This document shows positions 1 to 24,676 of a stretch of 24,676 nucleotides of DNA, in pieces; position 1 is the stretch's first letter, and the number at the start of each line of letters is the position of its first letter. This DNA comes from Wallemia ichthyophaga EXF-994 (lineage: Eukaryota; Fungi; Basidiomycota), in the NCBI RefSeq assembly GCF_000400465.1, contig NW_008806306.1, positions 1 through 24,676 on the forward strand, in the 5' to 3' direction. The notes beneath the pieces are model-generated. The model saw only the letters and a program-made list of their open reading frames with translations, had not been told where the DNA came from and did no database searches. A program made the position numbers and the translations under genes.

Positions 1-3000
1 GTGACCATAGTGAAGCTTACCGCCAATTTGTGACAGTGCTCTGGCTGCCATAGTACCGAAGGTCTGCTCCTTACCAGCAGCAATATCACCAAGAATACCA
101 ATGTTTTCAGAGAAAATATATTCACGAGCACCTAAGATAGCAACTGGAGATTTCTTGAACTCTGACTGACCGAAATGCTCATAAGGCGACTGATTTGAAA
201 CAGCATATTCTTCAAATTCACCAAGAACGTTACGGATCTTAAGACACTCTTCGAGGTAATTGTCCTGATATGTTGTGAGCTGATGCATAATTATCATACC
301 CACAAAAGAATACTCACCTGATTGGCATCGATAAGCTGGAGGTATTCACCGCGGTAGAAAATCATTGCATGGTTTTGATTGTCCGATTTACCATCACCGA
401 GAATTGGGTTACCTGGTAGCTCGACACGGAACTTAGGACGACGTTTACCATCAGGCATAATTTCCGAGTGACCGTCAATCAGCGCTGAGAACATACGTGG
501 TTCAGCACCCTCCTTTCTTGGTGGCTCTTCGTCGATGTATGCGATCTGGAGGTCTGGATAAGCGCGCAAAACAAACTCTGCATTCTCTTGCTCCTCCTTA
601 TTGAATTTGGAGTATCTTTGCATAGAGATAATGAATTTGAATTTACGTCTGGACATGTACTCCAATTCACGTTCCAATCTGTCAGTGTTACCACCAAAGA
701 GCTGTACCACCTCTGGGTTCTCAACACGGTAGAGTAACTTGATTGCCTTGCTGTAATTCATAAATCCGGAAATGGTACGGTAGAGAGTTTGAGCTCTAAG
801 TGATGCCCAGATACGGGTACGCAGTGTGTACTCTGGTGCTGCACTCTTGAAACCAATGCAGTAAAAAGGCAAATCGTCTGTCTTCTTTGGCGTGTCTTTT
901 TCGTCTTGTGATGGCGATCCACCGAATGGATAGCTACCGGGACCACCATATGCTGCCGATTCTTCTGCCAATATCTTAGTGTCTTTCACGAAGTTATCCC
1001 ACTCCACTGGGTGCAATTGCTTAAGGTACTCAAGCATTGTAACCCTTGTGTTGGTATCTTCTTCACGAATAATTTCTCTAAGAGATAACAGAATCTTTTC
1101 GGAGTAGTGCGGAACCAAGACCGTGAAAGTTGGCATTGCATCGACTGGTAGAGGTTCAGGGATAGAAGTAGTCAATGACTGAGAGAAGAAAGAGATACGA
1201 CGCTCGGCTTCTGAGCCCGGTGGGAAGAACTCCGCCTTGAGACCGCGGTCCTCCTGGCTGATGAAGAAGGCTGGTGCTCTAAGTGTGCGCTTGCCATCAT
1301 GTTCTGACGGAACTTGGTGGTAGAGAAGCTTTTGGACGTGGTCGATCGAAAGCAGGTGCTCACGATACATAGATATAATGATTGCGTTCCACACTTGCGA
1401 TACCAGCACCTTAGGTTTGTATTTGACTTCCATGTCAGCTGTAGCGAGCAACTTGGCGTAAATACGCTTAGGAAGGCGCTGGAAGATATCTTTCCAAGGC
1501 GTCCAGATGGATAGACCGAGTGCGAATGAACGCGCAACAGAGAATACGGATGACCAGATGACATACCATAGGTACTGTGGGACTGTTAGAATTAAAGCGT
1601 TGCATGTACATCCAACTCACAGTGTCTAAGAAGAAAAGACTCAAGTCCATGATAAACATGATTGTCAGGGTAAATGCAGCTTGGTTGGTACACAAAGCAT
1701 CACCAAAGAGCTTATCATTGCAATTTTGAATCTTCATTCCAACCATGACAGCCAATGGATCCTTGAACGAGAGCGTCAAGAAGAAGTACGACTCAGTGAA
1801 CTTGCATCCAAAGACCAAAACCCAGAGAAGGAGTGAGGTGACACGTGCGCTGGCGGAGAGAGATGGATAGGATGCAGTGAATGTTTGACTGGCAGCGTAC
1901 TTTCTATTGTTACCGCTAACTCTGTCACCGAGAATACGACCAGAAGGAACGATACCGAAAAAGACAGTGACCAAAACAGAGAAGGCGAACTGACAAATAG
2001 AAAGAATTAAAGCTTTCCTAGTTTCTCTGTCGTAACCAGCAATGTAGATGGTTGGTCCCACACAACCAGCCAAGCAAATGATCAGGAAGACAAGCTTGCG
2101 GGAGAGATTCGACGCGTTGTGCCAAGTAGTAGGAATAAAGATAAGTTCAGCGAGAGTAGCGCCAAGCATAATAACGGTTGCGACACCACCACCGAGAGCG
2201 GTAGCAGACCACTGCATTGGCTTGGTTGGAGCAGGGTCACCATAACGACGGTATACGTTTGGAGCGTTCCAAGCAGTAAAGTACCAAAAGACAGCAATGT
2301 GAGCGATCCAAATACGATTAAAGTTGACCAACAAGTGAAAGAAGGATCTGGATTCCTTGAAAGTCTTGAAGAAAACGGCATACCAGTCAATCTTGTCAAA
2401 CTTTAGGAAACGTTGGGCTGGAGGGATGTCGACTAATCGAGTCTTATCACTGAGAACAATCCTGTTAATACCTTCAGGGTACCAGAAGAGCTGATTAATA
2501 TCGTCGTAACCAATAATTTTTTCGTGGTCCTGTTCACGCTTAACAAACTTTCCATCGACAATCTCGTATCCCTGGTCACGATAATATCTGTAGAGGGGCT
2601 TGATAACGGCGCGAAGGTATAGGCCTTCTGGAACAGGGTCTGTTCTGCTCTGACACTCAGGGGAACGATAGTAATCGTCTGCGCACTTGAAGATGAAACA
2701 AACGCATTCAGGCATGAAACGAACGTTACCAGCTTCACCCCAGCAGAGAAGGTATAATGCGATTTGACGAAGTCTGTCGTAGGGTGACATGTTGTTCATT
2801 GCCTCGCGCCAGCGGCTCTTGGCAGATTCAAGAGATTTCTGACCAGCTGACATGAGTTTAGGCTTCTTACCCTTAGGGAAGGGGAAGGTGCCCAAGTTGG
2901 ATTGACCAATTGCATCGTCGAGATCGAGTTGAGCAGCAAAGTACCATTTGCGGTAGTTGGCGTGCTCACCACCGATGTAATCGGCGTGGAGAGTGGTCAA

Positions 3001-3460
3001 AGCCTGGTCAGGACTCATTCTCGAAGACCTAGAATCGAGCTGAATCATGAGGTGGTCGAAGAGATTCCTCGAGGAATCGCGCTGAAAACCGAATTTATTG
3101 GTCAAATCGATGAAAATATCTTCGATTTCTTCTTTGGACATTGGGATTTGATTTTCAACGGTCCAGCTCGGGTAAGGCTCACGGGGCCTCTGTTCGCGAA
3201 AACTGGGGTGAGGACCACCGAGAAAAGAAGGGGAACTGGTACCAGAGTTGTAGGCGTTTTTGTTGTTCATGAGGGAGTCGGTGGAGGCACCAAAACTGTT
3301 GTCAGGTCTGCGGGCTGAGGAAAGTGTGAGGGCTATAGAGTCATAAAAAGACGGAATACTCACGGTAATCCCAATCAGGCTCGTTGAAAGGATCGTCTAG
3401 CTCATCGATTGAGTGGTTATGCTGAGCGTGGTTGCTGTAATGCTGACCGTTGTAGGCCAT
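1..3460 (-). CDS. FKS1: 1,3-beta-glucan synthase catalytic subunit (GT48), copy A; 3' part runs off the left edge
   Basis: Model: ATG 3460 ([11 protein letters not shown]...DWDY), intron 3363-3315 (49 nt, GTGAGT..CAG), exon to ...FFLDT, intron 1620-1575 (46 nt, CTAAC branch), exon [17 protein letters not shown]...[23 protein letters not shown], intron 317-265 (53 nt), exon [14 protein letters not shown]...[27 protein letters not shown]...GGKLHYGH to base 1. All junctions keep frame. The motifs ([42 protein letters not shown]) are diagnostic FKS/callose-synthase signatures. Confidence 0.97.
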
Positions 3461-3772
3461 ATTTGCAGTCAGATTGAGAAAAGGTATAAATTAAGCTAAA
3501 ATGATAAAATCAAGTATTTCTTGATTATTTTATTTTTAACTCTTGGTGGTTTCCTGTAAAGGCTGCGACACGCTAAATTCCAAGCAGAGAGGGGCGCGGA
3601 GATGAACTAATTTGGAAGGTTAGACGGGTGAAACGCGGAAAACGCAATAGACGAATGTACGCAATGGGTAAATTAATTTTTATATTGTATATTATATTCG
3701 TTTATACATTCCATCACATTTTTGTAATAATGAGGTACTTATGAAAATATTCACTAAAGCGTTGCCTCGTAT

Positions 3773-3778
3773 ACGCGT
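3773..3778. promoter_or_regulatory. MCB-type element (ACGCGT) in the divergent FKS/membrane-protein promoter
   Basis: Exact ACGCGT at 3773-3778, with another ACGCG core at 3633-3637. MCB is the established MBF G1/S element in yeasts; function here is inferred. Confidence 0.35.
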
Positions 3779-4033
3779 TCATTGGAGTACATTAAGGGTG
3801 TCTTAGGTGTTCCGCGGACATGTAAAGAACCGTGCCTTGTTATCTAGCAACATCTCCTAGAATCAGTGAGGTCATTCAACGCACGGGCCAAGGTACTGAG
3901 GATTGAAATAAATAGGGTTATAATGGGTGGAGGGGTCGTGTGAGTTGAATGGTGGTGATTAAAGTGTGGAATTTCTATTATTCGTCTGGATCTCTCCATG
4001 TCTGGTGTTCTGAGATTGATGTGATATTCACCG

Positions 4034-4040
4034 TATATAA
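4034..4040 (+). promoter_or_regulatory. TATA-like element upstream of the membrane-protein gene
   Basis: TATATAA 70 nt upstream of the ATG at 4104. Confidence 0.35.
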
Positions 4041-4103
4041 TCTCGCAGTCAGTGCATACAGACGCAGTCATCAAGTGCGGTTAGTGCATCCAAGAAGAAC
4101 ACA

Positions 4104-5804
4104 ATGAATTTACGAATATATTTTATTAATTGCTTGTTTCTTGCTCACTGATTCCAATTTTTTGTTACTCCCCTTCATTCCAGTCATCGTAGCTGCGCTG
4201 CTTCCTTCTCCCAGCCATTGTCAAATACCCACGAGATGGATCGCCATCTCCCAGCGCCCACTCCTGCGCCATACCCGTCTAAGCCCGCCATCTCCCACTC
4301 TACCAGCTCCCGCGCAAACTCCCACCGCAACAAAGTCAGGAAGAGAGTACGCGCTAATTCTCCATTGAGCAAGAGGTACGGCGCTGGGACTGCCCCAGAC
4401 AACGATGGCTATCCTGACTGCGATAGCGTTGGCAACGATGTCGTTACGTGTTACCCGAGTACAGATACCTCACTCACCTCTGGTGATTATTCTAAAATCA
4501 TCTGGAATCCAAATCTGCCCCAGTTGTCGGTTCTTATTTCTGTTTATCCCCCCATCTAACTTCCATCCAGCACTGAAAACGGCAATCTCGATATTTATCT
4601 CTTTTCTGCCGATACCGAGCAAGTCGTTGAAAGCTGGCAAGATGTCCCCAATCAGCGTGGCTCTCAGCCTATTCACCCTGGTGATAATTGGTGGTCTCCT
4701 ATCGATGACAGCTGGGGTCCTTACGATGCTCAGGATCCTTCTCAGTGGTCTGACACTACCCGCGACTGGACTTATTACGCCGTTCTCAAGCCAGCGGGTC
4801 AGTCTCTTGATGGCGGTGAAGAGCACCAGGCCACTTTCACTGCTGTCCAAACGGCGCCTTTACAAAATCTCGTTCAATCTTCTTCATCTTCCTCATTCTC
4901 TCTAGCCAGTTCCAGGTCAAGTGTTTCTAGTGTTTCTACCGTTTCTTCGGCGTCTACAGCTTTCACTGCGTCCATGTCCGATCCTTCCTTTGCTTCCAGC
5001 GTTTCCACAGCCTCTACAGCCTCTACAGCCTCCATGTCCGGCTCTGACCAATCCAGTGCGGCCACTGCACTTGCAACGGAGTCCATTATATCGTCAGTCT
5101 CAAGTGTTTCTTCGGCCTCTTTAGCCAGTCTATCGTCGATATCCGCGTCCGACAGCGAGCGCTATTCATCGATAACCCAGTCCAACCTATCCACCCAGTC
5201 GGTGTTGTCGACGGCAGCGTCCAACAGTCTGCTCACAACGACAAACTCAAACGGCGACAAAATTACATCTTCAGTGAGGGTGACGCCCACGGGCGTGCTG
5301 CAGAACCAGAGCGCCGATGATGATTTCCCAGCATGGGCGATTGCGGTGATAGTAGTGCTCGGCGTACTAGCGCTGCTCGGAATTGCGGGTGGAATGTATC
5401 TGCTAGCGCGACACTGGCGGAGCGCACGTGGTGCAGCTGCCGCCACTGCTGCGGAGGCGGGTGGAGCGGCTGGCGGGGCTGCTGGTGCTGGTGCGGGTGA
5501 GGGTTCTGCAGCTGCTGGTGCTGCTGGTTTAGGTGCTGGTGCCGGCGCAGCGGCTGCAGGCGCCGGTGCACGGTCTAGTGGTGCTTCTTCGGAGAACGGA
5601 AATGCAAACGGGGCGGATAGAGAAGGCCCCATTACGTCTAATGAGGCTGCTGCTATGGCCGATGCTTTCAGACAAGCACTCCGATCGCCTGGCTTTGACG
5701 CTGGGGCGGCTGGAGTGGCTGCTGGTGAAGGTGCGTCGGGATTACAGCAGAATTCTGCAGCGAGACAGCCGGAAGTGGTACATGGCTCTGAAGCGTCGCA
5801 CTAG
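4104..5804 (+). CDS. Uncharacterised type I membrane protein with Mid2/Wsc-like architecture; 5' end uncertain
   Basis: Intron 4526-4570 (45 nt, GTCGGT..CTAAC..CAG) joins ...IIWNPNLPQF to TENGNLDIYLFSADTEQVVESWQDV...DNWW...ATFTAVQT. This reads in frame into the Ser/Thr-rich ORF 4974-5804. TM helix AWAIAVIVVLGVLALLGIAGGMYLLA at about 5331-5408, then a Gly/Ala-rich tail with AMADAFRQALRSP. The start is either ATG 4104 (needs a weak GTTTCT intron 4136-4183) or ATG 4236. Confidence 0.8.
5007..5033 (+). repeat. 9-nt coding tandem repeat (ACAGCCTCT x3; TAS TAS TAS)
   Basis: ACAGCCTCT ACAGCCTCT ACAGCCTCC, read directly, within the Ser/Thr-rich stalk. Confidence 0.75.
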
Positions 5805-5914
5805 CCTACAACCACTTATAGCCACTTATAGCAACTTGACATGACTTAATTTATTTGTAATATGGACACTAACTTGGTCTAATGAATTTATATATACCTT
5901 TGTTAGTTACCGCG

Positions 5915-8900
5915 ATGGCTCACAATGATGCGTGGATCAGCGATGCGTTTTTAACTCATTTAGGCGTTGCAGATGGGAAAATGGTCGAATACGCTAAGGA
6001 TATTGCATCCACTGCCAAATCAACAGAATCCCTCTACTCCAAACTGACCAGCCTCGGTTTCCCAGCTGGCGCAGATGTTTCCAATTTCGCTGCCCATCTC
6101 TACAGTGCAGTGCCCAAGAAATCAAAGCACAAGCATTCATTCAATTTGCACGAATCAAGGGACTCTAGGAAAAAGAAGGAGCGACTCGCCGTTGATCAAA
6201 ACTCGCAAAGATACGGTCTTCTCTTGGAAGATGACAACGACGACAACGGCAACACTCCCAGCACCTCCAATCTCCCATCTAAGAAAAGAGACAAAAAATC
6301 AAAGGATAAGCGATCTTTTAGAAGGAGAGATGACGACGACGCTTGGAAGAGCGATGACGAGGATAAATCCCGAAAGCGTGCGAGAGATATCTCCCCATCT
6401 CCTCCCCAAGGTGGAATAGATGACAATATTGAAGACGAGGATGCTAAGGAGAGAAGATTGGTTGAAGAGGATGCTCGAGAGCGTGATGAATTCGCCGAGC
6501 GTATGAAAGACAAAGACCGAGACCGCACCAAGAAGCTCGTCGAAGATCGCACCAATGACAGCGAGACAGTGCTACGAAGGAAGCTCGCCGACGATAAAGA
6601 CGCGCGCAAAGAAGCTATGCCTGATCTCCGTCTCCGTTCGCGCCAGGAATACCTCACTAAGCGTGAAATGCAGCAGTTGGAATTACTTAAGAAGAGCATC
6701 GCTGATGAAGAGTCCATGTTTGCTGGGGTGGCCATGTCCAGGCAAGAAATTGAGGAACTAGATCGCAAGAAGGCTGCACTCGCACTCGCTGAAGAACGTC
6801 TCAGGATTGATGACAAAGTTGACGGTTACATGCTCCCAGATGACTATATCACCGAGCAAGGTAAAATCGATTCCAAGAAGAAGAATAACGTTTTATATGC
6901 ACGCTATGAGGAGGGCAAGAAGGGTCAGGATCCTTCTGAGTTTGTTACTGATGTCGATCAGTGGGAGAAAGAGCAAACTGATAAGGCTCAGCTCACTACC
7001 GGTGCCCAAGACAGAGAAGTGACTGTAGACGATTATGACTTTGTCTTTGATGAGTCCCAGACAATCAAGTTTATCGCCGATTCCACCCTCTCAGGCAACA
7101 AGAGACAGACAACCGAACAAGCTCAGATGGAGGCTTCCATACAGGAGGCTGAAAATAGAGCAAAGTCCATCGATCAAGTCAGGAAGTCTCTCCCTATCTA
7201 TGATTACAGGGGCGATATACTACAGGCTGTCCAAGACCATCCCGTGCTTATCGTCTGTGCAGAGACAGGATCTGGAAAGACCACTCAACTCACCCAATAC
7301 CTCCATGAAGCGGGATACACTAAGAATGGACGTAAAATTGGATGTACGCAGCCTAGACGTGTCGCTGCAATGTCTGTTGCTGCCAGAGTGGCTGAGGAGA
7401 TGGGTAGCAAGGTTGGATATGATGTCGGATATTCTATTCGGTTTGAAGACATGACGACTGACAAAACTATGATTAAGTACCTCACTGATGGTATGCTTCT
7501 TAGGGAATTCCTCACTGAACCTGATCTCGCTAGCTACTCGGCTCTCATCATTGACGAGGCGCATGAACGTACACTCTCGACTGACATTTTGTTCGGCTTG
7601 GTGAAAGACATTGCTAGATACAGACCTGATCTTAGGCTATTGATATCTTCCGCGACGATGGATGCCGAGAAATTTAGCGAGTATTTTGATGACGCACCGG
7701 TCTTCTATGGTGAGTCAGCTTCAGAAGAGATTGAGTCGGTAACTGATACGGCTGCAGTACCCGGGCGTCGCTACCCGATCGATATTCACTACACACCGCA
7801 ACCCGAAGCCAACTACCTACATGCGGCGGTGACAACGGTGTTTCAAATTCACACTACGCAACCGCGGGGCGATATTCTCGTCTTTTTGACTGGTCAGGAC
7901 GAGATTGAAGCTGCGGCGGAGAATATACAGGAGACAGCGCGTGTGCTTGGCGACAGGATACCTGAGCTGCTCGTGTGTCCCATCTACGCAAACTTACCTT
8001 CAGAAATGCAGGCTAAGATATTCGAGCCGACGCCGCAAGGTGCACGCAAGGTGGTGCTTGCAACTAACATTGCCGAGACGTCTATCACGATTGATGGTGT
8101 CGTTTTCGTCATTGACCCCGGTTTCGTTAAGCAAAACGCTTATAACCCCCGCACTGGCATGAGCAGCCTGATCGTAACGCCGTGCTCTCGTGCAGCTGCT
8201 AAACAGCGCGCTGGACGTGCCGGTCGTGTTGGCCCGGGTAAATGTTTCCGCCTCTACACCAAATGGGCACACAATAACGAGCTCGACGAGAGCACTGTGC
8301 CGGAAATTCAACGCACTAATCTGGGCATGGTCGTGCTTATGCTGAAGAGTTTGGGTATTAACGATCTTATCGGGTTCGATTTTATGGATCCTCCGCCAGG
8401 AGAGACTATCATAAAGGCACTCGAGATGCTCTATGCACTTGGCGCACTCAATAGCAAGGGAGAGCTAACTAAGATGGGTAGAAGAATGGCGGAGTTTCCG
8501 GTCGACCCTATGCTGAGCAAGAGCATATTAGCGAGTGAGGGCTACGGGTGCACGGATGAGGTGCTCAGTATAATCGCTATGCTTTCCGAGTCTGCCTCTC
8601 TGTTTTTCCGCCCTAAGGATAAGAAGATGCATGCAGACAAAGCTAGACAGAACTTCATCAAGCCTGGTGGAGACCACTTTACGCTGCTGAATGTATGGCA
8701 GCAGTGGGCCGATACCGGATTTAGTCAGCAGTGGTGTTACGAGAACTATGTGCAGTACAAGGTGCTCTGTCGGGTGCGAGATATTCGAGATCAATTGGCA
8801 GGACTGTGCGAGAGGGTGGAGCTCTTTGTCGAGAGCAGCGTGAAGGCTGACGATATCATACCCATCCAGAAGGCCATCCTGAGCGGCTACTTTTACAACA

Positions 8901-9226
8901 CCGCGCGGATGGACAAGGGAGGCGGGTCGTATAGGACGCTGAAAAGTAGGTGTAAGAGTTTTCTTTTGCGCAAACTCGCTAACCACGCCCTATCAGCCAA
9001 CCAGACTGTGCATATACACCCGACTAGCTCGGCATTCAACATGCAGCCGCCACCTCGACACATGCTCTTCTACGAGCTCGTACTCACTTCGAAAGAGTAT
9101 ATGCGACAGATAATGCCTATCCAGTCCAGCTGGCTGGCAGAAGTCGCACCGCACTACTTCACGTCGCAAGACCTCCAGGACCTTAACACGAGCAACAGGA
9201 AAATGCCCAAAGCGGTAGGGAAGTAG
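5915..9226 (+). CDS. PRP2: Pre-mRNA splicing DEAH-box helicase Prp2/Cdc28/DHX16
   Basis: Motifs AETGSGKTT, CTQPRRVAA, DEAHER, SAT, ATNIAETSIT, QRAGRAGR. Subfamily-like segments LRSRQEYLTKRE, DQWEKEQ and DILFGLVKDIARYRPDLRLLISSAT. Likely ATG 5915. Introns 7710-7757 (48 nt) and 8946-8996 (51 nt) restore APVFYVPGRRYP and RTLKTNQTVHIHP. Confidence 0.94.
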   Translation: MAHNDAWISDAFLTHLGVADGKMVEYAKDIASTAKSTESLYSKLTSLGFPAGADVSNFAAHLYSAVPKKSKHKHSFNLHESRDSRKKKERLAVDQNSQRYGLLLEDDNDDNGNTPSTSNLPSKKRDKKSKDKRSFRRRDDDDAWKSDDEDKSRKRARDISPSPPQGGIDDNIEDEDAKERRLVEEDARERDEFAERMKDKDRDRTKKLVEDRTNDSETVLRRKLADDKDARKEAMPDLRLRSRQEYLTKREMQQLELLKKSIADEESMFAGVAMSRQEIEELDRKKAALALAEERLRIDDKVDGYMLPDDYITEQGKIDSKKKNNVLYARYEEGKKGQDPSEFVTDVDQWEKEQTDKAQLTTGAQDREVTVDDYDFVFDESQTIKFIADSTLSGNKRQTTEQAQMEASIQEAENRAKSIDQVRKSLPIYDYRGDILQAVQDHPVLIVCAETGSGKTTQLTQYLHEAGYTKNGRKIGCTQPRRVAAMSVAARVAEEMGSKVGYDVGYSIRFEDMTTDKTMIKYLTDGMLLREFLTEPDLASYSALIIDEAHERTLSTDILFGLVKDIARYRPDLRLLISSATMDAEKFSEYFDDAPVFYGESASEEIESVTDTAAVPGRRYPIDIHYTPQPEANYLHAAVTTVFQIHTTQPRGDILVFLTGQDEIEAAAENIQETARVLGDRIPELLVCPIYANLPSEMQAKIFEPTPQGARKVVLATNIAETSITIDGVVFVIDPGFVKQNAYNPRTGMSSLIVTPCSRAAAKQRAGRAGRVGPGKCFRLYTKWAHNNELDESTVPEIQRTNLGMVVLMLKSLGINDLIGFDFMDPPPGETIIKALEMLYALGALNSKGELTKMGRRMAEFPVDPMLSKSILASEGYGCTDEVLSIIAMLSESASLFFRPKDKKMHADKARQNFIKPGGDHFTLLNVWQQWADTGFSQQWCYENYVQYKVLCRVRDIRDQLAGLCERVELFVESSVKADDIIPIQKAILSGYFYNTARMDKGGGSYRTLKSRCKSFLLRKLANHALSANQTVHIHPTSSAFNMQPPPRHMLFYELVLTSKEYMRQIMPIQSSWLAEVAPHYFTSQDLQDLNTSNRKMPKAVGK

Positions 9227-9314
9227 CGGTGACTGTATTGATTATGTAAAAACAAATATAATATATGCCGCACATGCCAATATTTACTTGTTTTGGCCGA
9301 ACCATCATCCATTA

Positions 9315-11147
9315 ATGGCCGATCAACAACCACCACACGAAGGACACGAAGGACACGATGATCCAATGGGGGATTTCGACAGGACGGTGATAGTGCATCT
9401 CGACCACTTCTTTGCGAATGCAGATGAGAACGGGCAAGGGCAAGGGCGTGGGCATACGCATACGCACACGCACGAAAGGCACAGCGACGACGGCAGCAAC
9501 CAGGAGAACGGTGACGGGGTTGATGAACGTAGCGAACGCAACCCAGAAGGTGTGGGAGGAGTGCACACCACACACCACACACCACTAACAGACATACCAG
9601 AACGCAGAGACAGCCCGTTCCCGCGCCCGCTTATACCTGTCCAGATACTTTTATCGTCATTCATGGCAGCGCTGCGAGCGCGCAATGGCGGTGGTGGTGG
9701 CGTGGCTGGTGTGGATGGCGCGAACGGCGGTGCTGGTGCGAATGCGAATGCAAATACTAACGGTAATGCGAACGGGGGTCCACCTGAATTGACGGGAATG
9801 GGTTTCCGTATCGAACGCAGTCCGCTGCCTGCAGAACACCCACTGCGCCAGCACCTCAGCCATTTGCGGGGGCAGGAGGGGCATGGTAGTGATACAGCGC
9901 ACTCTCCACACCCAAATTACACTCAAACTCAAAATGGCGGCGGTGAGATGGGCGAGCGCAGCAGCCTCCTCGAACGCATCGAGGAGCTGCATAGCAGGAA
10001 CCCCTACGGCGAAAATGCTTCCCGCCTCCCGCCACCGTTTACTATTACTATCAATTTCCCTATCGCGGGCGGACTGCATAGCGAGAAGAAGGCTGATCCC
10101 GCTCGCGCTGAAACCATCCTTGGCGCTCTGCCGAAGCTGCATAAGGGCGTGACGAGACGTATGAGCAGAGTCGGCGTCGAGACTACGTGTGGCGTCTGTC
10201 TCGATAGCCTCAATGCCAAAGCTCCACTACAGAAGGCGGAGAATAGTGCGGGTGCAGAGGGTGGCGAGAATAGGGAGAATAGGGAGAGCGGCACGAGTGA
10301 AACAAATACTACTTGCAGCACTCCCTCTCCAGAAGATGAAGCAAAACGCGAAGAAGAAATCGTCGCTCTGCCATGCTCGCACGTGTTCCACTCTAACTGC
10401 TTAAGACCGTGGTTCGCACTGCACACGCTCTGTCCGATGTGTCGCTTCGATCTCGATCCCGAGTCAATGACCATGTCGACGCCGCCGCCAGAAGAGAGAG
10501 GAAGGGAGGGCGAGGACAACCCTTTTGTCAGCATCATCGAACGTCTCGTGAGAGGTAATAGAGAACGGGCACCGGCACCAGAAGAAACCAACAACGGCGG
10601 CCGAGCTGAAAGTGCAGCTGCGTCAGGCAGGAGCAGTCGTCATCACCCCTATGCTCGCGTGAGGTCGGCCGGTGAAGGCGGCAGTCGCGATAGCCGCCCC
10701 GCTCGCAACACTCGCTCGGCAACTGCTGCTGCTGCGACGGCCGCTTCGCTCGATGAAACACACACACAAACACAAACACACTCACATTCACACACTCAGC
10801 GTCCACCACCACCCCCAAAGAAGTTTGAAATACCAAAGGCTGGACGCTCGCTCGAGGATATTCTAATTAAGCGTGAGAGAGAGAATGGACTGCGGTGCGA
10901 TATGAAGGAGTGCAAACTGGGCCCGACGGATGAGTCAGAAAGGCTCGAAACGGCAGATATGCTGTCTATAGGTGGAGCAGAGAAACCAGTCTGCTCACAC
11001 TTCCTTCACTCTCATTGCTATCACCTCGCCAATGGGAACTGTAGATATTATAACCCGGCGCACACACATCAAGACGGCTGCGTATTGTCGAGATGTCCTA
11101 TATGTAAGACAATTGGGAGTGTGGAGAAGCATGAGCTGGTACATTAA
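9315..11147 (+). CDS. RING-H2 zinc-finger protein (putative E3 ligase) with a second C-terminal RING-like Cys/His domain
   Basis: Single long ORF, first ATG 9315. CGVC...LPCSHVFHSNCLRPW...CPMC at 10188-10442; second C-x4-C...CSHFLHSHC...CPIC at 10896-11105; low-complexity linkers. Confidence 0.85.
   Translation: MADQQPPHEGHEGHDDPMGDFDRTVIVHLDHFFANADENGQGQGRGHTHTHTHERHSDDGSNQENGDGVDERSERNPEGVGGVHTTHHTPLTDIPERRDSPFPRPLIPVQILLSSFMAALRARNGGGGGVAGVDGANGGAGANANANTNGNANGGPPELTGMGFRIERSPLPAEHPLRQHLSHLRGQEGHGSDTAHSPHPNYTQTQNGGGEMGERSSLLERIEELHSRNPYGENASRLPPPFTITINFPIAGGLHSEKKADPARAETILGALPKLHKGVTRRMSRVGVETTCGVCLDSLNAKAPLQKAENSAGAEGGENRENRESGTSETNTTCSTPSPEDEAKREEEIVALPCSHVFHSNCLRPWFALHTLCPMCRFDLDPESMTMSTPPPEERGREGEDNPFVSIIERLVRGNRERAPAPEETNNGGRAESAAASGRSSRHHPYARVRSAGEGGSRDSRPARNTRSATAAAATAASLDETHTQTQTHSHSHTQRPPPPPKKFEIPKAGRSLEDILIKRERENGLRCDMKECKLGPTDESERLETADMLSIGGAEKPVCSHFLHSHCYHLANGNCRYYNPAHTHQDGCVLSRCPICKTIGSVEKHELVH
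10758..10797 (+). repeat. Imperfect (AC)n-rich coding microsatellite (THTQTQTHSHSHT)
   Basis: acacacacacaaacacaaacacactcacattcacacac, read directly; similar CA-rich tracts near 9452-9480 and 9563-9590. Confidence 0.65.
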
Positions 11148-11429
11148 ACAACGATATCACGATATCACAAAGCTTGAACAGCCATTTGGATAACGAATAA
11201 CGACATTTCTTGATAAATTTTAACAGCATTTGTATTGTGATATAGCTATCAAACCTAATTTTTGTGATGAACTCAGTTACGTCAATTGGGCCAGAACTCT
11301 CGAGGCCAATGGCTCGCATAAAACCGCCTCGATTCGCTGCATATCTTAAGCTTGCAAATGACCTTCAGCCTTTTGCGGTTCTTGTCCTTTACGCACCTCC
11401 ACCACCACAAGACACAACGACAGAAGAAA

Positions 11430-12628: not shown

Positions 12629-12646
12629 TTCGGTGATATCACCGAA
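12629..12646. promoter_or_regulatory. 18-bp perfect palindrome TTCGGTGATATCACCGAA (CGG-N8-CCG with a central GATATC)
   Basis: Reads identically on both strands; about 230 nt upstream of the GDH ATG. The regulatory role is inferred. Confidence 0.5.
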
Positions 12647-12872
12647 AGTAGAGCATATGATACAGTGGCAAAACAAAGTGAGCTCGTAAATGAGACAGGA
12701 GAAGACATGTACCGTAAACTACAATACATGCATCTCATATGATCTTGTACTGCACCAGTGCGGATGCGCCGAAAACCACCGGAAATCTCCCTTATCTAAT
12801 TTTTAATTTTGATGCGTTAAGAAGAGCGTCACTTGCGCGCGCCTTTCTTTAACACACTTTACAAACACAGAA

Positions 12873-14618
12873 ATGGTAAGTTGACGATCGTTCCCTTGGT
12901 ATCCGTGCAGGCTGCCCGCCTCGCTACTCGTGCGGCTCGCCTCCTCCATTCTTCGCTTGGGGCCGGCGGAAGATCGCCGCAGGCGGTCGTTTGAGCAAGC
13001 AGAGTGAATGGAAGCGAGGAACACAATTGGCGGCTGTCGATTTGCCGTGCACTGTGCCGTAGCGTCTCTCGGTTGTTGCATGAGTCATTTATTGCGCAAC
13101 CCCGGAAAAAGGTTCCGCTATTCTGCCGGCAATTCTAGCACCACCGTAGCTAAGCACTACCTGGAATTTAATCCAGCAGCCATAGCTTGGCGGCTTCTGC
13201 ATGGATACCAACATCTGAAGCATTCACTAACATCACGTAGGCCCCACCAGCAGAACCAGAATTCGAGCAAGCTCTTCACGAGGTCGAAAGCACTTTGGCT
13301 CCTCTCTTTGAAAAGCAGCCGGAGTACAAGAAGGCTCTCAAAGTGATCCAAGTCCCAGAACGTGTCATCCAATTCCGCGTTCCATGGGAGAACGACAACG
13401 GTGAAGTTGAAGTCAATATCGGTTACAGAGTCCAATTCAACTCTGCTCTCGGTCCATACAAGGTGTGTTGATAGATGAAAATTTGCATCATTACCTAACA
13501 CTCAGTCCCAGGGTGGCTTGAGATTGCACGAAACTGTCAACCTTTCCATCTTGAAGTTCCTTGGATTCGAACAGATCTTCAAAAACGCCTTAACTGGCTT
13601 GCAGCTTGGTGGTGGCAAGGGTGGTTCCTGCTTTTCGCCAAAGGGCCGCTCGGAAAATGAAATCCGCCGTTTCTGTCAGTCCTTCATGACTGAATTGTCA
13701 AAGCACATTGGTCAAGACACTGATGTTCCAGCTGGTGACATTGGTACCACTGGTCGTGAAGTAGGCTACATGTTCGGCCAATACAAGAGACTCCGTAACG
13801 AGTTCACCGGTATTCTCACCGGTAAGGCTCTCGCATGGGGTGGATCCCTTATCAGACCAGAAGCCACTGGTTACGGTGTTGTCTACTATGTTGTTGAAAT
13901 GCTCAAGTACTTTAACGAGACTGTTAAGGGCAAGCGTACCCTCGTTTCTGGCTCCGGTAACGTCGCTCAATACGCTGCACTCAAGGTCATTGAGCTCGGT
14001 GGCTCGGTCCACTCTCTCTCCGACTCAAGGGGCACCGTCATCTCTGCAAGTGGATTCACTCCAGACGAAATTTTCGAAATTCAAGACCTCAAGGCCAAAT
14101 TTGGTTACCTTAACGACTGGGTTAAGTCGAAAGGTGATAAATTCGTTTACCACGCCGGTGCACGTCCATGGACTCTTGTCGACAAGGTTGACATTGCGCT
14201 TCCATCTGCCACCCAAAATGAGGTCTCTGGCGATGAAGCCAAGGCACTCATCAAGGCAGGTTGCAGAATTGTCGCTGAAGGATCAAACATGGGCTCAACA
14301 CAAGAGGCCATCGATGTCTACGAGTCAACCCTTCAAACCGACAAGCCATTGTGGTATGGTCCAGGTAAGGCTGCCAACTCTGGTGGTGTTGCTGTGTCTG
14401 GTCTCGAAATGGCTCAAAACTCAGCAAGAATCCAATGGACTGCTCAAGATGTTGATGCTCGTCTCGAAATCATCATGAAGGAGTGCTTCCAGAACTGCTT
14501 TGAAGTCGGTCAGAAGTATGGTGCTGGTAGGGGTTACCCATCCCTCGTCACCGGTGCCAACATTGCTGGATTCTTGAAGGTTGCTGATGCTATGAAGTCT
14601 CACGGTGACTGGTACTAA
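12873..14618 (+). CDS. GDH1: NADP-specific glutamate dehydrogenase
   Basis: Exon 1 is ATG only (12873-75, context ACACAGAAATG|GTAAGT). Intron 12876-13240 (365 nt, CTAAC branch, TAG). Exon 13241-13462 ([10 protein letters not shown]...[11 protein letters not shown]...FNSALGPYK). Intron 13463-13511 (49 nt). Exon 13512-14618 (GGLRLH...GGGKGG...DVPAGDIG...RPEATGYG...SGSGNVA...EGSNM...HGDWY). Total 443 aa, with strongly biased codon usage. Confidence 0.96.
12977..12986. promoter_or_regulatory. Leu3/LeuB-type CCG-N4-CGG motif in GDH intron 1
   Basis: CCG-CAGG-CGG read directly. Leu3 (S. cerevisiae GDH1) and LeuB (A. nidulans gdhA) are established activators acting through this motif class. Short motif in GC-rich DNA. 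Confidence 0.35.
13080..13088. promoter_or_regulatory. Gcn4/CpcA (AP-1-like) optimal site ATGAGTCAT in GDH intron 1
   Basis: Exact match to ATGA(C/G)TCAT inside an amino-acid-biosynthesis gene. Confidence 0.5.
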
Positions 14619-15446
14619 GCGTGCGATGTTATGTTGCCATTTTCCACTTCGTTTCTTTCTGTTCGTTTTTACTTACCCTTACACACTCACTGTAAACGCA
14701 TAAATACTCTTGTGAAATTATGTCTTTGTTTGTGTCTGATATGTATGAGTGAGGCTGATTTGGTATAATAGCACTGATGAAATAAGGAGGTATTAATGAG
14801 ATAACTTGGTAGTTTGAAAAATTGCTGTTTCATGCAGTGCGAATCGACTCTTGGTAACACAGTTGCTCATATAGCCTTGCAATTCACTTAGAACGTGAAC
14901 ATATCGACAGGAATGGTCAATAGGTCCACTTTAAGAAAACGCTTCTCTAATAAAACATTCAAACTCAACTCACAATTCCCCCCAAATATCACCGACTGAT
15001 ATCAACATCAGCCCAACCTTGGCACAGTAGATTGACTTTTAGAAATCTTCAAATAAAAATACTTAATTGATAGCCCTAGATAAAAACACGCTCTAATGAC
15101 TAGATTTGCTGCCATTGAGTCGCTATGGCGCCTTGTGGGCTCTTCGGAAGCTGCAATCCGGCATCACCCCTAAGCCGCCAATACCCGAGTAAAGCATGAT
15201 AAATATCCATTAACTGCTGTATTAATGGGAAGCACTAATACGTAAACGTCTCCGGTACAGCATGTGCCCTACTCATATGAATTTTCACTATCCACAGCTT
15301 ACTTGGTAAAATCACCAAAAAAGAAAAAGAAAAACACGCAGCAAACATCTGGGAAATAAGAATCATCAATTAGCGTTAAATGTACATTTACTGTAAGAGT
15401 ACTTGAAGCGTGTAATGTGTTTTGCCTTTGTGAAATAAGGCGAAAC

Positions 15447-15683
15447 TTAATGGCCAGCGACGGTGTGAGCGTTCTTGTTGCCGTTGAATTCGACCTTTCC
15501 GAGAGATTCGAAGATAGCTTGCTTGTGAGCGTTAGCGTTAGTTCCTGCGTCTTTTGACTGTTGAGATGTGAGCAAGGTGTCTAGATAACAAACCCCACAT
15601 ACGACGTGAGCAGCGCTGGCGTGGGCTTTAGAGCCAGTGTGGATTGAGCGGGTGAATTGGGCGATGAATCTTGTACTGAACAT
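15447..15683 (-). CDS. Small (63 aa) uncharacterised protein with a mitochondrial-presequence-like N-terminus
   Basis: CAAAACAAATG start context. Exon 15683-15603 (MFSTRFIAQFTRSIHTGSKAHASAAHV), intron 15602-15558 (45 nt, GTATGT..CTCAC..CAG), exon 15557-15447 (SKDAGTNANAHKQAIFESLGKVEFNGNKNAHTVAGH*). Exon codons show high-expression bias (Phe 5/5 TTC, Asn 5/5 AAC, Ile 3/3 ATC), as in GDH. Confidence 0.8.
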   Translation of the reverse strand: MFSTRFIAQFTRSIHTGSKAHASAAHVVCGVCYLDTLLTSQQSKDAGTNANAHKQAIFESLGKVEFNGNKNAHTVAGH

Positions 15684-16028
15684 TTGTTTTGTAGCTGCGG
15701 TGGTTCAGGACAAGTTCCATATCGGGCTCTTTATCTTCCCCACACTATCGCACCCCAACGAATTAATCGAGAATCGTATGACCGTTGCTTTTCATTTAAA
15801 CAAACAAACCCGAGCAAATAAGTAGACATATTGTGATATGCGGAGTGTGAATTTAGGTATGCGCTGCAAGACTAAGTTTGATTTGTTTTTGTGGGTGAAA
15901 ATCTTCCCAGGACCACGCAGCACAAGGCTAAAAAGAGAGTAAACGTGATTAATAGATGCTGATAGCCTATCTATACACTTCCCACTCTTTGTCTCCAACA
16001 TTTCTCATCACTGGCACTCGCGCCTCAG

Positions 16029-16034
16029 ACGCGT
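16029..16034. promoter_or_regulatory. MCB element (ACGCGT) immediately upstream of MCM3
   Basis: Exact ACGCGT about 25 nt before the start codon, plus a CGCG core at 16019-16022. The element is typical of G1/S DNA-replication genes. Confidence 0.55.
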
Positions 16035-16058
16035 AAAACGACTTCATTAACGATCAAA

Positions 16059-18866
<2,808 letters not shown>

Positions 18867-18966
18867 GCAACATAATTTATACCAATTAAAGTGCATGTAT
18901 TTATAATTAAGTCCGGTTATTATTATGTAGTCGTCTCGTCATTAGTAGAAGAAGGAAGCATGAAGA

Positions 18967-19898
18967 TTAGTTAGAACTGTGTGAAAATAGACTGCATTTG
19001 TATGAGTGAGTAACTAAGGAGCGATGGACAATCACTTACGCTACGAAATAAAATGGCACAGCACATAATAAAACAAATGTGGTTATCCAAACCAGCCATA
19101 ATGAAACGCCATAATGAACAGTCACACCCAAAGCGTCTGTTTTGTTGTTCAGTGAAAATTTGCATGATCGACCAACTTACCACCATTTACGTCTCTCATT
19201 TTGACAATAACAGCTGTGAGGATTGAAGAGCCGACTGTGACGGTCAAGAAAGCAAGCAAACAAAAAACGCCTGCGAAAGAGATAGTATAGCGTATGGGGA
19301 TCAAACCAGCAAACAGAGCAACGCCTGTGAAAATTGCTGACAAGAAGATAAGCCAATATCCAGCAGCGCTATATTCCCTCAGATAGTCGCTAGACGTGAA
19401 GGTGGATTGTGATGTTTCGAAGTGTTGTCTGACAGCATCTTTGAGGTTTTCTGGCGTGTCTTCAATAATGTAAGTGTAAGGATCCAATCTAGAAATGAAA
19501 TGTGAGTCTGCGTCTCTTGCCAACTCGCAAACTCCATCTCTCCTATCCTCGATTGTGCCACAGTAAGAGTACTGACCAAAGTAGTACTCCTGTCTCACAC
19601 CCAGACTCTGTCCAAGAGCAGCTTCCGAGTCATTTGCGTATAGTGTCTATTTCGGCTTTGTGATTAGTCGTGGAGATTATACGTGTGTGACATCACCACT
19701 CACTGATACGTCGAGTTCGCCGTTTTGGATGCTGAGCTGTTGGCCTAAAGATGATGTGTCTACTGAGATATACTTGAGCGCAGACGGCACCAAGTCAGTG
19801 CTAATAGCGCTAATGTTTACGAATATGAGAAGTACGCCGCTTGACAAGGTCAAAAGGACATAAATGAGGATTGAGATGAGCTTCAACGCTAAACCCAT
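18967..19898 (-). CDS. SUR7/PalI-family four-TM membrane protein
   Basis: Exons joined by introns 19703-19647 (57 nt), 19180-19137 (44 nt) and 19039-18992 (48 nt). N-terminal TM; extracellular loop with YYFGQYSYC...C (claudin-like aromatic/Cys motif); three further TMs including YGVSLWLVW. Confidence 0.8.
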
Positions 19899-20209
19899 TT
19901 TAATGATTATTGATTGTGTTGTATTCGCTACGTTTAGATTCTTGGTTCTACTTCTTGCGCTTTCAAGTCTTATAACACTAAATTAAAATTTCACACAAGG
20001 TGCAGTGATGATAGTAGACGAGCTAGAGCGTGATCAAGTATTTGTAAAGCATTTGAAATTTATTCCAAGTTTGAAACATATCTTTATTGGTTTCCGTATC
20101 TCATTCCTTTTCGGGTCTGCTATGTCAAGCTCTGAATTTGCTATGAAAATTTGAGCGTGTAATCGTTTGCAGCACAAATCTTGACTATTCTCAAATGCTG
20201 CTTCCGATA

Positions 20210-20218
20210 ATGACTCAT
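20210..20218. promoter_or_regulatory. Gcn4/CpcA/AP-1-type site ATGACTCAT upstream of the SUR7/PalI gene
   Basis: Exact 9-mer about 310 nt upstream of ATG 19898. Confidence 0.3.
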
Positions 20219-20388
20219 CCTTTATAAAATCAAGCATGCGTTTTATCCCAACACACTGTCTCATAATGCACGTCTTCTCTCCTCTGAAAATTTGCTCACC
20301 AAATTATTAGCTGAAATACATAGATTAGGAAACAAAGATCACTATCAAATTAAGATATCATGAGAAAGACTTTTATTTAAAGAAATCA

Positions 20389-21476
20389 CTACCAAGTCTC
20401 ATATCCACCGCTGACTTTCACATCAGATCCTTGAACGAAGCTGCTGGCTGAGGACAGTAACCACACAGCTGCACCACGTAGCTCATGACTGTAAAAGTGG
20501 TTAGTTACGGTCATTATCAATGTATCAAGAACTCACTGTATACCAAGACGCTGCATGGGTGATCCACTCTCCCACTTCTCTTTCAATCCAGGATTCTGCG
20601 CAAACACAGCTTCCGTCATATTGGTTGAGAAATGACCAGGCGAGATGCAATTCACTCTGATATCGTCCGGACCAAGCTCTGCAGCCATTGAACGAGCCAT
20701 CTGGAGAACAGCACTTTTAGCACTATTGTAGCCAACCCAATGTTGATCGCGGTTTGTTATAGATCCACTCATACTGGCTATCATAGCGATCGAGCCTGTT
20801 TGCTTGTACTTCTTCATCTGCCTAGCTACGCCTTGACTTGTGTAGAGAACACCGCCAGCATTGATTCGCATAATTCTCTCGAATGCTTCAGAGGGATAAT
20901 CACTGCAGTCGTAGGTCTCTAGAATTGCCGCAGCGCATACAGCTCCATTGATACCGCCTTCCTCTTCGCCTATTTTGTCACAGAGAGCGAAGACAGCTTT
21001 CTGATCAGAAACATCGATTTGGTGGTATATTAAGCGACTTCCGAGCGCGCTGACGTAGTCTTGCACAGCTTTAAATGTCGTGTTAGGGGATGCTGCCATG
21101 TCGAACACATGCACGTTTGCACCAGCTTCACAAAGCGATTGTGCAATCTCTAAACCGAGACCGCCTGCTCCTCCAGATACAACTGTACACTTTGATCGAG
21201 TTAGATCTGAATTCAAGTTAAACCAATTTGACTCACTTTGCCCTCTAGTGAAAATTCGTTGAAAATATCCCTCGTGGCTTCGCGTTTGCCTTGAGCGTGC
21301 TGCAAAGCAGCTTCATTACCAATAACACGACCACCGGGCAGCCTGCCTTTAGCATTAGGGGCTGATGGAGCGTGTGTGAATGGGGAGGGTATCGGTGTCT
21401 TAAGTACTGCTGAGCTTTTGAAGGTGCGAGTGGGCTTGAAACTTCTGTTATTTCTGAATGCTCTTGTTAAGATCAT
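20389..21476 (-). CDS. Classical SDR, D-arabinitol/polyol dehydrogenase-like, with a mitochondrial-presequence-like N-terminus
   Basis: ATG 21476 (MILTRAFRNNRSFKPTRTFKSS...FSLEGK), intron 21236-21190 (47 nt), CTVVSGGAGGLG...VFDM...IASMSG...YNSAK...IRVNCISPG, intron 20536-20489 (48 nt), HELRGAAVWLLSSASSFVQGSDVKVSGGYETW*. The Asp after beta-2 suggests NAD(H) preference. Confidence 0.88.
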
Positions 21477-21812
21477 AGTTAAGTGATAAAGCGTTCGCTG
21501 CGGTGTGGAAGCGTCTTATACTCTCAGATCACACCGGCCGGTCATATGAACAATCGGGCCATTCTGGAGAAATGTTGAATGATTTCAAAAACCTTTGAAT
21601 CTAAGTAGTAGAATTAGTGAGAATACTGGAAGAACAAAGCGATTGCTTCGTCCATGTCGTCTGTTTGGCGTGTTGTCGGCGCTGCGGTGAAATGGTGGCG
21701 GAGGTGGCTAAATAGAGTTGTAATTGAGTTTTACATGAGAACTTAAAATATTATCCAATTGTCGTTGATTTTTGATCGGATTAAAACAGTGAAACTCTTG
21801 CCGACAAGCCAC

Positions 21813-21835
21813 CAAGGAATTTCAAGGAATTTCAA
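21813..21835. repeat. 10-nt tandem repeat (CAAGGAATTT x2.3) just upstream of the Ayr1-like ATG
   Basis: caaggaattt caaggaattt caa, read directly. Confidence 0.7.
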
Positions 21836-21850
21836 ATTATCTTCAACTCA

Positions 21851-22761
21851 ATGGCAAGAACAGTATTGATCACTGGATGTAGTCAAGGTTAGCTCAACTA
21901 TTGCCCTCTAATATTTCTGGCATTCCTAACACTCTATTAGATGGCATCGGTGAATCGCTCGCTATAAGCTTCCAAAGAGCAAATTGCGAGGTTATAGCCA
22001 CCGCTAGAGATGCCTGCAAAATGAAAAGACTCGCGGAATCTGGAATCAGAACGCTGGAAATCGATATATCCAGTGACGACAGTGTAAACGCTGCTGTTCA
22101 GAAGCTCGCAGAAGAAAATATATCCATAGATATACTCGTAAATAACGCCGGTATAATAAACAACGGGCCTTTGGTTGAAACTTCCTTAGATACCGCCCAG
22201 AAGGTTATCAACACCAACGTCATCGGCTCCTTCCGTCTCACAAAGGCGCTCGTACCCTCTATGATTAAGTCAAAAGAAGGCCTCGTTATAAATGTCAGCT
22301 CTGTCGTAGGCGAAGTTCCTCTTCCTTTCGGTGGTTTTTACGCTATAAGCAAATCAGCCTTGAATACCCTTTCAACAGTCTTGCGTACAGAGCTAGAACC
22401 ATTCAATATCAAAGTCATGGTCCTCGAGCCAGGCGCTGTGAAGAGCAACATTGCGAATAATCACCTTCCATACACTGCTTCCGAGGCATCTCCGTACCAT
22501 CCTATTAAAGACTTGATTGCAAACAGATTGCAACTCTCTCAAATACACTCAACAGCGCCTGGAAGAGAAGCCTTTGCCGATGACGTCGTTCGATACGCTC
22601 TCAAAAGGTCACCACCAAAGCTTCTCATCACAGGAGGCAAAGCGTGGCTCTTCAAGATACTCACAAAGTTACCCTCGTCTCTTGTGCAATGGCTTTTTTC
22701 ATATAGATTCGGCTTGAAAAAGCTCAAGAACATTGTATCTACTCAGCGCAAGACCAATTGA
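21851..22761 (+). CDS. AYR1: SDR, Ayr1-like (1-acyl-DHAP reductase / lipase family)
   Basis: ATG 21851, MARTVLITGCSQ, intron 21888-21940 (53 nt), DGIGESLA...LVNNAG...NTNVIG...YAISK...KVMVLEPGAVKSNI...FGL. The TGCSx(G/D)GIG motif and overall layout match the Ayr1 subfamily; exact orthology is unverified. Confidence 0.8.
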
Positions 22762-22936
22762 AATGCTTTGTAATATATCACTAAATACACTCTATAGCAA
22801 GATAAATAGGAATGGTTTGAGGTGAGACTGATGTCATCGTCAGTACTTCCATCTCTGAGTATTTTTATGTGGGAATGCAGAGAGTATATAGTTGAATTTG
22901 ATGCGATAAAATTGCTTGGAGAATCGTAAACTTTGT

Positions 22937-24676
22937 TTACCAGCTAAAGAAAATGTCCTTGTAAATCAATGGAATGAAAATAGTTGAAAGCAAACAACCC
23001 ATAATGATAAAATAGATGAATCCATACTTGTAGAATACTCTTCTCCGCTCCATCTGGATCTTGCGTGAGTAAAGCGGTGGTCTGATCTGCTTGGATGGTT
23101 TAAGCCAGAACAATGCGATCGAATGTATCCTGTCAAATCCTGGTATAAGTGTTGGAATTGCGAGTATGAGGAATAAAATGTGACATGTCAGAAAGTCAGC
23201 CGTGAAGAGCGAGCATTCTGCAATCTTTGCGAAGAATTCTCTCAGTGGATGCGTCATAATATGCTGACCTAGCCCCGTGTACCACCATTTACCGCTCCAC
23301 CAAGCTCTGTTTGTCTCATCATTCTTGATTTCCCTGCTAAGGAAGGTGGCTATTATTGACTTAACGAATGCTCTTTGAATCGCCATTGAAGTAATGATAC
23401 CGAGGATGGTTGAACTTCCTCTCCAGTTTTCCAAAAACCATAAATATTCAAATGTGGCAATCTGACCAAGCACCGCAAATGCATGAACAGTTGCAGCCAC
23501 CATAGCTGGATATTTTTGCCAAAGTCCAGTCAGCTTCCTCCCGTAAAAGAATGACAGCATAAACCCAGTGAGTAGTACCATCGCATTAAGAAGAAGTGGA
23601 ATAAACGTAACGTGGAGTATTCTGATGAGCATGCTTGGCTTAACGACGTACTCATTGTTGATGGAATTCATGAACATGTAAGCTATGACGAAAATCAGGG
23701 CCATAAAACACGGCCAGATTATCTCCGAGAACAACACCACCTGCCAACCTGCCTTGGCGCTGTCATCCAAGTATTTTTCAGATGGTAGACCCAGTATCTT
23801 TTTCCGATAACCTGTAACACGAGTACGTGACATCCTACAGAAACTGATCCATGAGTTGGCATGGGTCTTTGAATTGCCTCTCGACATCCAGTGGAGGAAT
23901 TCTCTATAATCTATGATAAAATCATATAAAGAAAATTGATGAGGGTTGAATGCAAATGGTGCAAGTCTAAAAAATGAATCAATATTGCGAAGAGGTTGAA
24001 TAACTTCAAGCACTCACGCCAATGCCAATCCAGAAAACAAGAAGTATAATAGATGCGGAACCCACATCGTAAGCGATATGAAAGTAAGCATCAGCAGCGT
24101 TCGCATACCCATGTATATACTAGGACCAGCAAATCGCGAGAAAAGTAAAGGAAATGATATTCTGGTAGTAGCGAAACCACGTCCGGTGGCAATATATCTC
24201 GCACCACCGAATGTTAACGATGTAACAATCTGTTTAACGGTTAGAAAACTCAACTATGTGGAAAATACCTACAGAGTGACGATAGATTTGTGTTGAAAAC
24301 ACCTCGAAAACTGGGGAAAGTGATAAAAATTGCTTTGTCAACCTGATAAACGCCTTCCATGCACCTCTATCCATGAGCTCGTGCATAAACAGCGGCAGGA
24401 AAGCAATCATGAAGACCAAAAAGATGGAAACGATCGTACGCTTGATCCATTCATAAACCGGGTAAAGATTGTAGCAACCAGGCTGCCCACCCACGTAATC
24501 TCCATTTTCATCGTGTTTGCAGTCTTCTAGTGTCGCATTCAGCGTACCAAGGAATACCACTAAGGTTACATCAGTAAATATAATGAACGAGAGCGGAAAT
24601 CCACTTACTTGTTACTGTAATTATTTGTACGGAAAATATAACTAGTGTGTTGTTTACGTGGAAACCACCATGACCG
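22937..24676 (-). CDS. FKS: 1,3-beta-glucan synthase (GT48), copy B; C-terminal membrane domain only, 5' part beyond the right edge
   Basis: From base 24675: GHGGFHVNNTLVIFSVQIITVT, intron 24608-24560 (49 nt), MVFLGTLN...GQPGCYNL..EWIKR...SLSPVFEVFSTQIY, intron 24272-24230 (43 nt), FGGARYIATGRGFAT.R..F..L.SRFA..SIY.G, intron 24017-23967 (51 nt), PFAFNPHQF...WMSRGN...RELKNDETNRAWW-like segment...FWLKPSKQIRPP; stop 22937-39. Confidence 0.95.

Follow-up and report, generated by a model that had tools for sequence, protein, structure and literature searches.

Scaffold KE007256.1 of Wallemia ichthyophaga EXF-994 very likely ends on both sides in the gene-converted core of two FKS paralogs collapsed at K = 21

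The stretch of DNA analyzed here (the window; 24,676 bp) is the complete scaffold KE007256.1 of assembly GCA_000400465.1 from the fungus W. ichthyophaga EXF-994, and both window ends are assembly ends. Each end falls inside a gene predicted to encode a 1,3-beta-glucan synthase of the FKS type, paralog A on the left and paralog B on the right. We consider it very likely that the scaffold ends in the catalytic core of these two paralogs, which would have been homogenized by gene conversion and then collapsed in an assembly made at K = 21. The parts of the window that carry this reading are as follows.

1 to 3460, minus strand: 5' part of FKS paralog A (predicted GT48 1,3-beta-glucan synthase), the first 1104 codons of a 1739-amino-acid protein, truncated by the scaffold end
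3460-3364, 3314-1621, 1574-318 and 264-1, minus strand: exons of paralog A (spliced gene model)
1 to 21, minus strand: left scaffold end, GGTAAGCTTCACTATGGTCAC, the first 21 nt of a 29-nt exact match between A and B; a K-mer branch node
24656 to 24676, minus strand: right scaffold end, CGGTCATGGTGGTTTCCACGT, the last 21 nt of a 71-nt exact match between A and B; a K-mer branch node
22937 to 24676, minus strand: 3' part of FKS paralog B, residues 1351-1881 (531 codons) of an 1881-amino-acid protein, beginning at GHGGFH
24676-24609, 24559-24273, 24229-24018 and 23966-22937 (stop included), minus strand: exons of paralog B, with a translation identical to the tail of protein P0245

A first-pass annotation, made from the letters of the window alone, had read A as cut after GGKLHYGH at the left end and B as entered at GHGGFH at the right end, both on the minus strand, and the translations agree. 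Base 1 is the final base of the His codon in the minus-strand translation of window 264..1, and the minus strand from 24675 begins with GHGGFHVNNTLVIFSVQIIT. The annotation had also placed the two points about 95-100 residues apart and proposed that the same piece is missing from A and B. In the complete gene copies, the gap between the break points is 290 nt (97 codons; A positions 3715-4004), corresponding to about residues 1196-1292 of Saccharomyces cerevisiae Fks1, and this piece is missing from the scaffold for both genes. Its further supposition, that the window ends might be contig ends, proved right as well. The missing 290 nt were taken from assemblies of other, near-clonal strains that match the window at 100% identity wherever they overlap it, and all comparisons rest on assembled sequences. 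Repeat scans of the window found neither an overlap nor common internal repeats between its two ends, and the only tandem repeats in it are two low-complexity coding arrays.

Judged from sequence, A and B are GT48 fungal 1,3-beta-glucan synthases. The Pfam families FKS1_dom1, FKS1_dom2 and Glucan_synthase are present in canonical order in both paralogs (PF14288, PF23605 and PF02364; 629 bits for partial A, and 1186 bits with the same three families for full-length B), and the core matches residues 1171-1321 of S. cerevisiae Fks1 in PDB entry 7xe4 (E = 8e-78). Paralog A shares about 84% identity with FKS proteins of other basidiomycetes, and the reading frames of both paralogs are intact in many strains. 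In the EXF-994 annotation, the B fragment appears as a 459-amino-acid partial "1,3-beta-glucan synthase component FKS1" (EOQ98688.1/XP_009270480.1).

The position of the two breaks is explained by the exact matches between the genes. When every maximal match of at least 15 nt between the A and B genes was listed, only four reached 21 nt or more (29, 38, 62 and 71 nt), all of them within A 3694-4025; the core also holds one match of 20 nt, and matches outside it are at most 17 nt long. The 29-nt run occupies A 3694-3722; on the left, the window stops at A 3714 and includes exactly the first 21 nt of this run. The 71-nt run occupies B 4350-4420; on the right, the window boundary is B 4400, and exactly the last 21 nt of the run are included. 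The EXF-994 genome was assembled with SOAPdenovo 1.04 at K = 21 (PMC3849046). Since the overlap at each end equals K, the coincidence of the two ends is not due to chance, and the ends are the branch K-mers that flank a node chain shared by A and B. The scaffold break is thus an ordinary assembly artefact, namely, repeat collapse in a de Bruijn graph. It resembles other SOAPdenovo collapses at K = 21 in that the ends sit at the outer K-mers of sequence exact in two loci, the shared stretch is missing, and larger-k assemblies bridge the gap; it differs in that the repeat is a 0.3-kb, apparently converted stretch in two diverged essential genes instead of a transposon or ribosomal DNA, and it is nonetheless the same in kind.

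Later strain assemblies were made with IDBA-Hybrid, which was reference guided and used a maximum k of 120 and a minimum and seed k of 20 (PMC6738226). Several of these assemblies break in the same core, leaving contigs of 24,945, 24,983 and 25,150 bp. Logan assemblies of public reads contain a 24,603-bp contig (with the B and RING-finger open reading frames) and a 9,256-bp contig, and the break in the FKS core seems to recur with this different assembler.

Whether the core is unusually similar between A and B, and not simply conserved, was addressed with an in-frame alignment of five sequences that starts 264 nt ahead of the left break and runs to 685 nt past it. The sequences were the two W. 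ichthyophaga paralogs, the A orthologs on contigs L001 and L002, and the B ortholog on contig L010. The core protein is nearly invariant in all five sequences, so that only synonymous sites are informative. At the DNA level, the A and B cores are 93% identical over 336 nt and 98.3% identical over a 174-nt sub-tract. The proportion of synonymous differences (pS; Nei-Gojobori method) between A and B in the four parts of the alignment is as follows.

Left flank, 240 nt: pS 0.68
Core-1, 162 nt: pS 0.45
Core-2, 174 nt with 3 differences: pS 0.083
Right flank, 372 nt: pS 0.71

Synonymous sites are saturated in both flanks. In core-2, all other pairs (A versus its orthologs, B versus its ortholog, and A versus B of the relatives) have a pS of 0.49 to 0.64. 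Where A and B have an amino acid in common, 52/55 of the codons are identical in core-2, versus 76/157 in the flanks (Fisher p = 9e-11), and the corresponding count in core-2 of the relatives is 32-36/55 (p = 9e-6 to 2e-4 versus the 52/55 of W. ichthyophaga). The parsimony-informative sites of core-2 unite the two W. ichthyophaga paralogs by 11:0 and 6:0, whereas those of the flanks favor the ortholog topology by 16-32 versus 10-17. As orthologs diverge normally in core-2, the low divergence between A and B is attributable to lineage-specific interlocus gene conversion and not to constraint. This pattern indicates that a short tract of the catalytic core has been homogenized by such conversion.

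The conversion proposed by the first-pass annotation as one of three options is therefore borne out in its essentials: the paralogs appear to share a gene-converted core that collapsed in assembly, and the cores are far more similar to each other than are the rest of the genes. Its description of the segment as near-identical does not extend to the whole core, which is not identical throughout; the core is a mosaic in which the exact runs are enough to collapse a graph at K = 21.

An improbable alternative is that the similarity of the cores reflects extreme purifying selection together with shared codon bias, that no conversion took place, and that the break arose from long exact matches occurring by chance. 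In its favor, the core protein is nearly invariant in all five sequences, and species codon usage does produce the 10-17 sites that group paralogs by species in the flanks. However, the same 174 nt in which A and B of W. ichthyophaga differ at 8% of synonymous sites differ at 49-64% of them between orthologs and between the relatives' A and B, and the contrast in codon identity given above points in the same direction. Moreover, the identical tract differs in extent by strain, with a 119-nt A-type stretch in the B gene of one strain (SPNX), which codon selection cannot yield.

This variation was seen among strain assemblies that are reference guided. B differs from A in core-2 at 3 sites in the EXF-994-type strains (SPOK and SPOL) and at 1 site in SPOF, SPOC, SPOH and SPOA, where the exact runs reach 101 and 80 nt. 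In SPNX (GCA_004918315.1), the contig with the 5' part of B (SPNX01000028.1; L018) and the 24,945-bp contig with the 5' part of A (SPNX01000079.1; L019) end at the same position and share an identical suffix of 119 nt, which equals k-1 for the maximum k of 120. This stretch of the SPNX B gene is A type, whereas the B gene of other strains has 15 differences there; it includes a change of SHIGG to SQIGG (His to Gln), and the tract extends at least 80 nt further 5' than in other strains. These features, in one reference-guided assembly, suggest another, or a longer, conversion from A into B. A chimeric assembly is an unlikely source of the SPNX tract, given that the sole exact run common to A and the B gene of other strains at the start of the tract is 17 nt, which is shorter than the minimum and seed k of 20. 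Across strains, A hardly varies (1 difference in 800 nt), and B has about 14 differences in 860 nt of the same aligned region (L005, L012, L016 and L017 versus L008, L013, L014 and L015). Conversion probably ran from A (donor) to B (recipient).

A and B are two separate complete genes. The window was compared at the DNA level with two strain assemblies, SPOK01000011.1 (217.5 kb) and SPOL01000009.1 (226 kb), both of which are 100% identical to it; the former matches window bases 1-21147 and 12937-24676 and extends past both ends. Both contigs carry a complete A (1739 amino acids) and a complete B (1881 amino acids) about 19.5 kb apart on the same strand, with different outer neighbors; in gene orientation, B lies upstream and A downstream. 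The genes preceding B outside the window encode TMEM33, Vma12/TPR and CCDC47 proteins, and the sequence past window base 1 is A type, matching A orthologs rather than the 3' part of B. Four further strains have the same layout on contigs of 217-320 kb, and in all, at least seven other strain assemblies hold the block in contigs of 184-320 kb with complete A, complete B and unique outer genes (complete A in L005, L006, L012, L016 and L017; complete B in L008, L009, L013, L014 and L015). On metagenome contigs of related species, a complete A ortholog lies beside the genes for the helicase and the RING-finger protein (L001), and a complete B ortholog lies beside those for the dehydrogenase and the MCM protein (L010); both contigs keep the gene order of the block between the paralogs. 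The A and B proteins are 61% identical overall and 98% identical in the core.

These contigs bear directly on another option raised from the window alone, that the 25-kb block is circular or tandemly repeated and that the A and B fragments are halves of one FKS gene. The two fragments do lie on one strand and do lack the same 97 codons, such that a head-to-tail join via a single core copy would make an open reading frame. This arrangement is refuted by the separate complete genes and unique flanks on the bridging contigs, the continuation of A beyond base 1 as A-type sequence, the complete A and complete B found in the same gene order in related species, and a DNA identity between the A and B flanks of only 72-76%. 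The last option, that the shared break point is due to windowing, trimming or scaffold filtering and that the ends are unconnected, has nothing beyond its prior in its favor and is refuted, as the window covers the entire scaffold and is no slice of a longer one, both ends lie exactly 21 nt into exact A/B runs at K = 21, and contigs of about 25 kb recur in the strain assemblies and, at 24,603 bp, in Logan.

We therefore return to a conversion-homogenized core that was collapsed at K = 21, and we propose that the scaffold would have arisen as follows. Two anciently diverged FKS paralogs, on the same strand and about 19.5 kb apart, flank the scaffold block. Interlocus gene conversion would homogenize the stretch of the catalytic core at about Fks1 residues 1196-1292, leaving the four exact runs. 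At K = 21, these shared runs would merge the A and B paths into one collapsed chain of nodes that is entered at two points and left at two, and the unique path from the 3' part of B to the 5' part of A would be emitted as its own scaffold, each end carrying a 21-nt branch K-mer. In short, the core made near-identical by conversion is what the assembler could not pass through at K = 21, which is why the scaffold ends in both genes. The analysis demonstrates which scaffold this is, that the two genes are separate and complete, how the exact matches are placed, the value of K, the fall in synonymous divergence and the phylogenetic incongruence. We infer the core sequence of EXF-994 itself (via near-clonal strains whose sequence equals the window at 100% identity), which way conversion ran, and what became of the collapsed 0.3-kb node.

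Four points weigh against this explanation or parts of it. First, the missing 290 nt come from the reference-guided IDBA-Hybrid strain assemblies and are thus not fully independent of the EXF-994 reference. Second, the signal in core-1 is weak (162 nt; pS 0.45; Fisher p = 0.009), and core-1 may be an older, partly eroded conversion tract or may simply reflect codon bias. Third, the outgroups L001, L002 and L010 are metagenome contigs, and L001 and L010 may belong to different species. Fourth, the direction from A to B rests on small differences in core-2 counts (19 versus 28) and on the tract in the single strain SPNX.

With respect to the wider distribution of the two genes, Wallemia-like A and B orthologs with about 70-81% DNA identity to the window are found in environmental metagenomes (L002, L003, L004 and L010; ERZ286xxxxx and ERZ272xxxxx), and the protein cluster P0001/P0267 was seen on up to 24 contigs. 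As for a second FKS clade beyond Wallemia, only the L010 ortholog (P0141) is clearly B type among 78 matches, in a comparison that falls short of a proper phylogeny. The two genes also differ in structure: just after the core, B has introns at 24608-24560 (49 nt) and 24272-24230 (43 nt) on the minus strand that are absent from A, and the B ortholog on L010 has introns at both of these positions, indicating that the intron difference between A and B is older than the species split. The conversion tract ends before the first of these two introns.

The region between the paralogs and its internal features can be summarized as follows.

3461 to 22936, no strand assigned: unique 19.5-kb block between the paralogs (gene tables and repeat scans), with no internal repeats joining both ends
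4236 to 9226, plus strand: helicase region, modeled in EXF-994 as two genes of 507 and 1086 amino acids and in other strains, with identical DNA, as a single gene of 1572-1592 amino acids
11430 to 14618, plus strand: region in which a 631-amino-acid EXF-994 model fuses the EF-hand and glutamate dehydrogenase genes, which are separate in other strains (214 and 442-499 amino acids)
5429 to 5735 and 9686 to 9740, plus strand: imperfect GC-rich (about 55%) repeats of the GCTGCTGGTGC type with periods of 12-21 nt

The genes of the block encode a DEAH-box helicase, a RING-finger protein, an EF-hand protein, a glutamate dehydrogenase, an MCM protein, a SUR7 protein and two short-chain dehydrogenases, and no tRNAs were found in the window. 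The GCTGCTGGTGC-type repeats sit in the N-terminal extension of the helicase and in the RING-finger gene, match excursions of GC and AT skew at 5-6 kb and 9-11 kb, and are probably low-complexity coding sequence.

Comparable conversion is known from another fungus. In Candida glabrata, a conversion tract between FKS1 and FKS2 that covers hotspot 2 is associated with echinocandin resistance in clinical isolates (PMC12006411). The two cases are alike in that short-tract interlocus conversion between FKS paralogs yields a mosaic gene, varies from isolate to isolate and escapes or misleads short-read methods. They differ in that the tract in Wallemia lies upstream of hotspot 2, over the cytoplasmic glycosyltransferase core, in that the Wallemia paralogs are linked, with about 19.5 kb between them and a common strand, and in that the organism is a non-pathogenic, obligate halophile. 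Linked paralogs are also known to evolve in concert through ectopic gene conversion in yeast duplicates and in globin and opsin gene pairs. The present tract shares with those systems a bounded stretch of low synonymous divergence within old duplicates and a contrast between a tract tree that groups paralogs by species and a flank tree that groups orthologs, and it differs from them in being very short (about 0.17-0.34 kb) and in lying on the most protein-conserved segment. Because of this location, conversion would be almost silent in the protein, the one exception being the His-to-Gln change in the B gene of a single strain. The two Wallemia genome papers (PMC3849046 and PMC6738226) make no mention of glucan synthase or of gene conversion. 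The Wallemia case is a further instance of known phenomena and reveals no new kind of system.

Users of the EXF-994 reference are faced with two truncated FKS genes and a scaffold that lacks their catalytic core, so that gene counts, orthology calls, read mapping and variant calls around FKS are unreliable, and false single-nucleotide polymorphisms derived from the paralog are a particular risk in the core. The biology behind the break is modest but real, and its interpretation as a small case of concerted evolution is well supported: it provides a small, clean and strain-variable example of interlocus conversion confined to the most conserved segment of old glucan synthase duplicates. W. ichthyophaga is said to have long been considered asexual, and the finding bears on the recombination debate in this species. 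We tentatively suggest, while leaning slightly against it, that conversion between A and B is recurrent and ongoing, with the conserved A repeatedly overwriting the catalytic core of the fast-evolving and more polymorphic B. If this is true, recurrent conversion would represent natural concerted evolution limited to the active-site segment of an essential cell wall enzyme.

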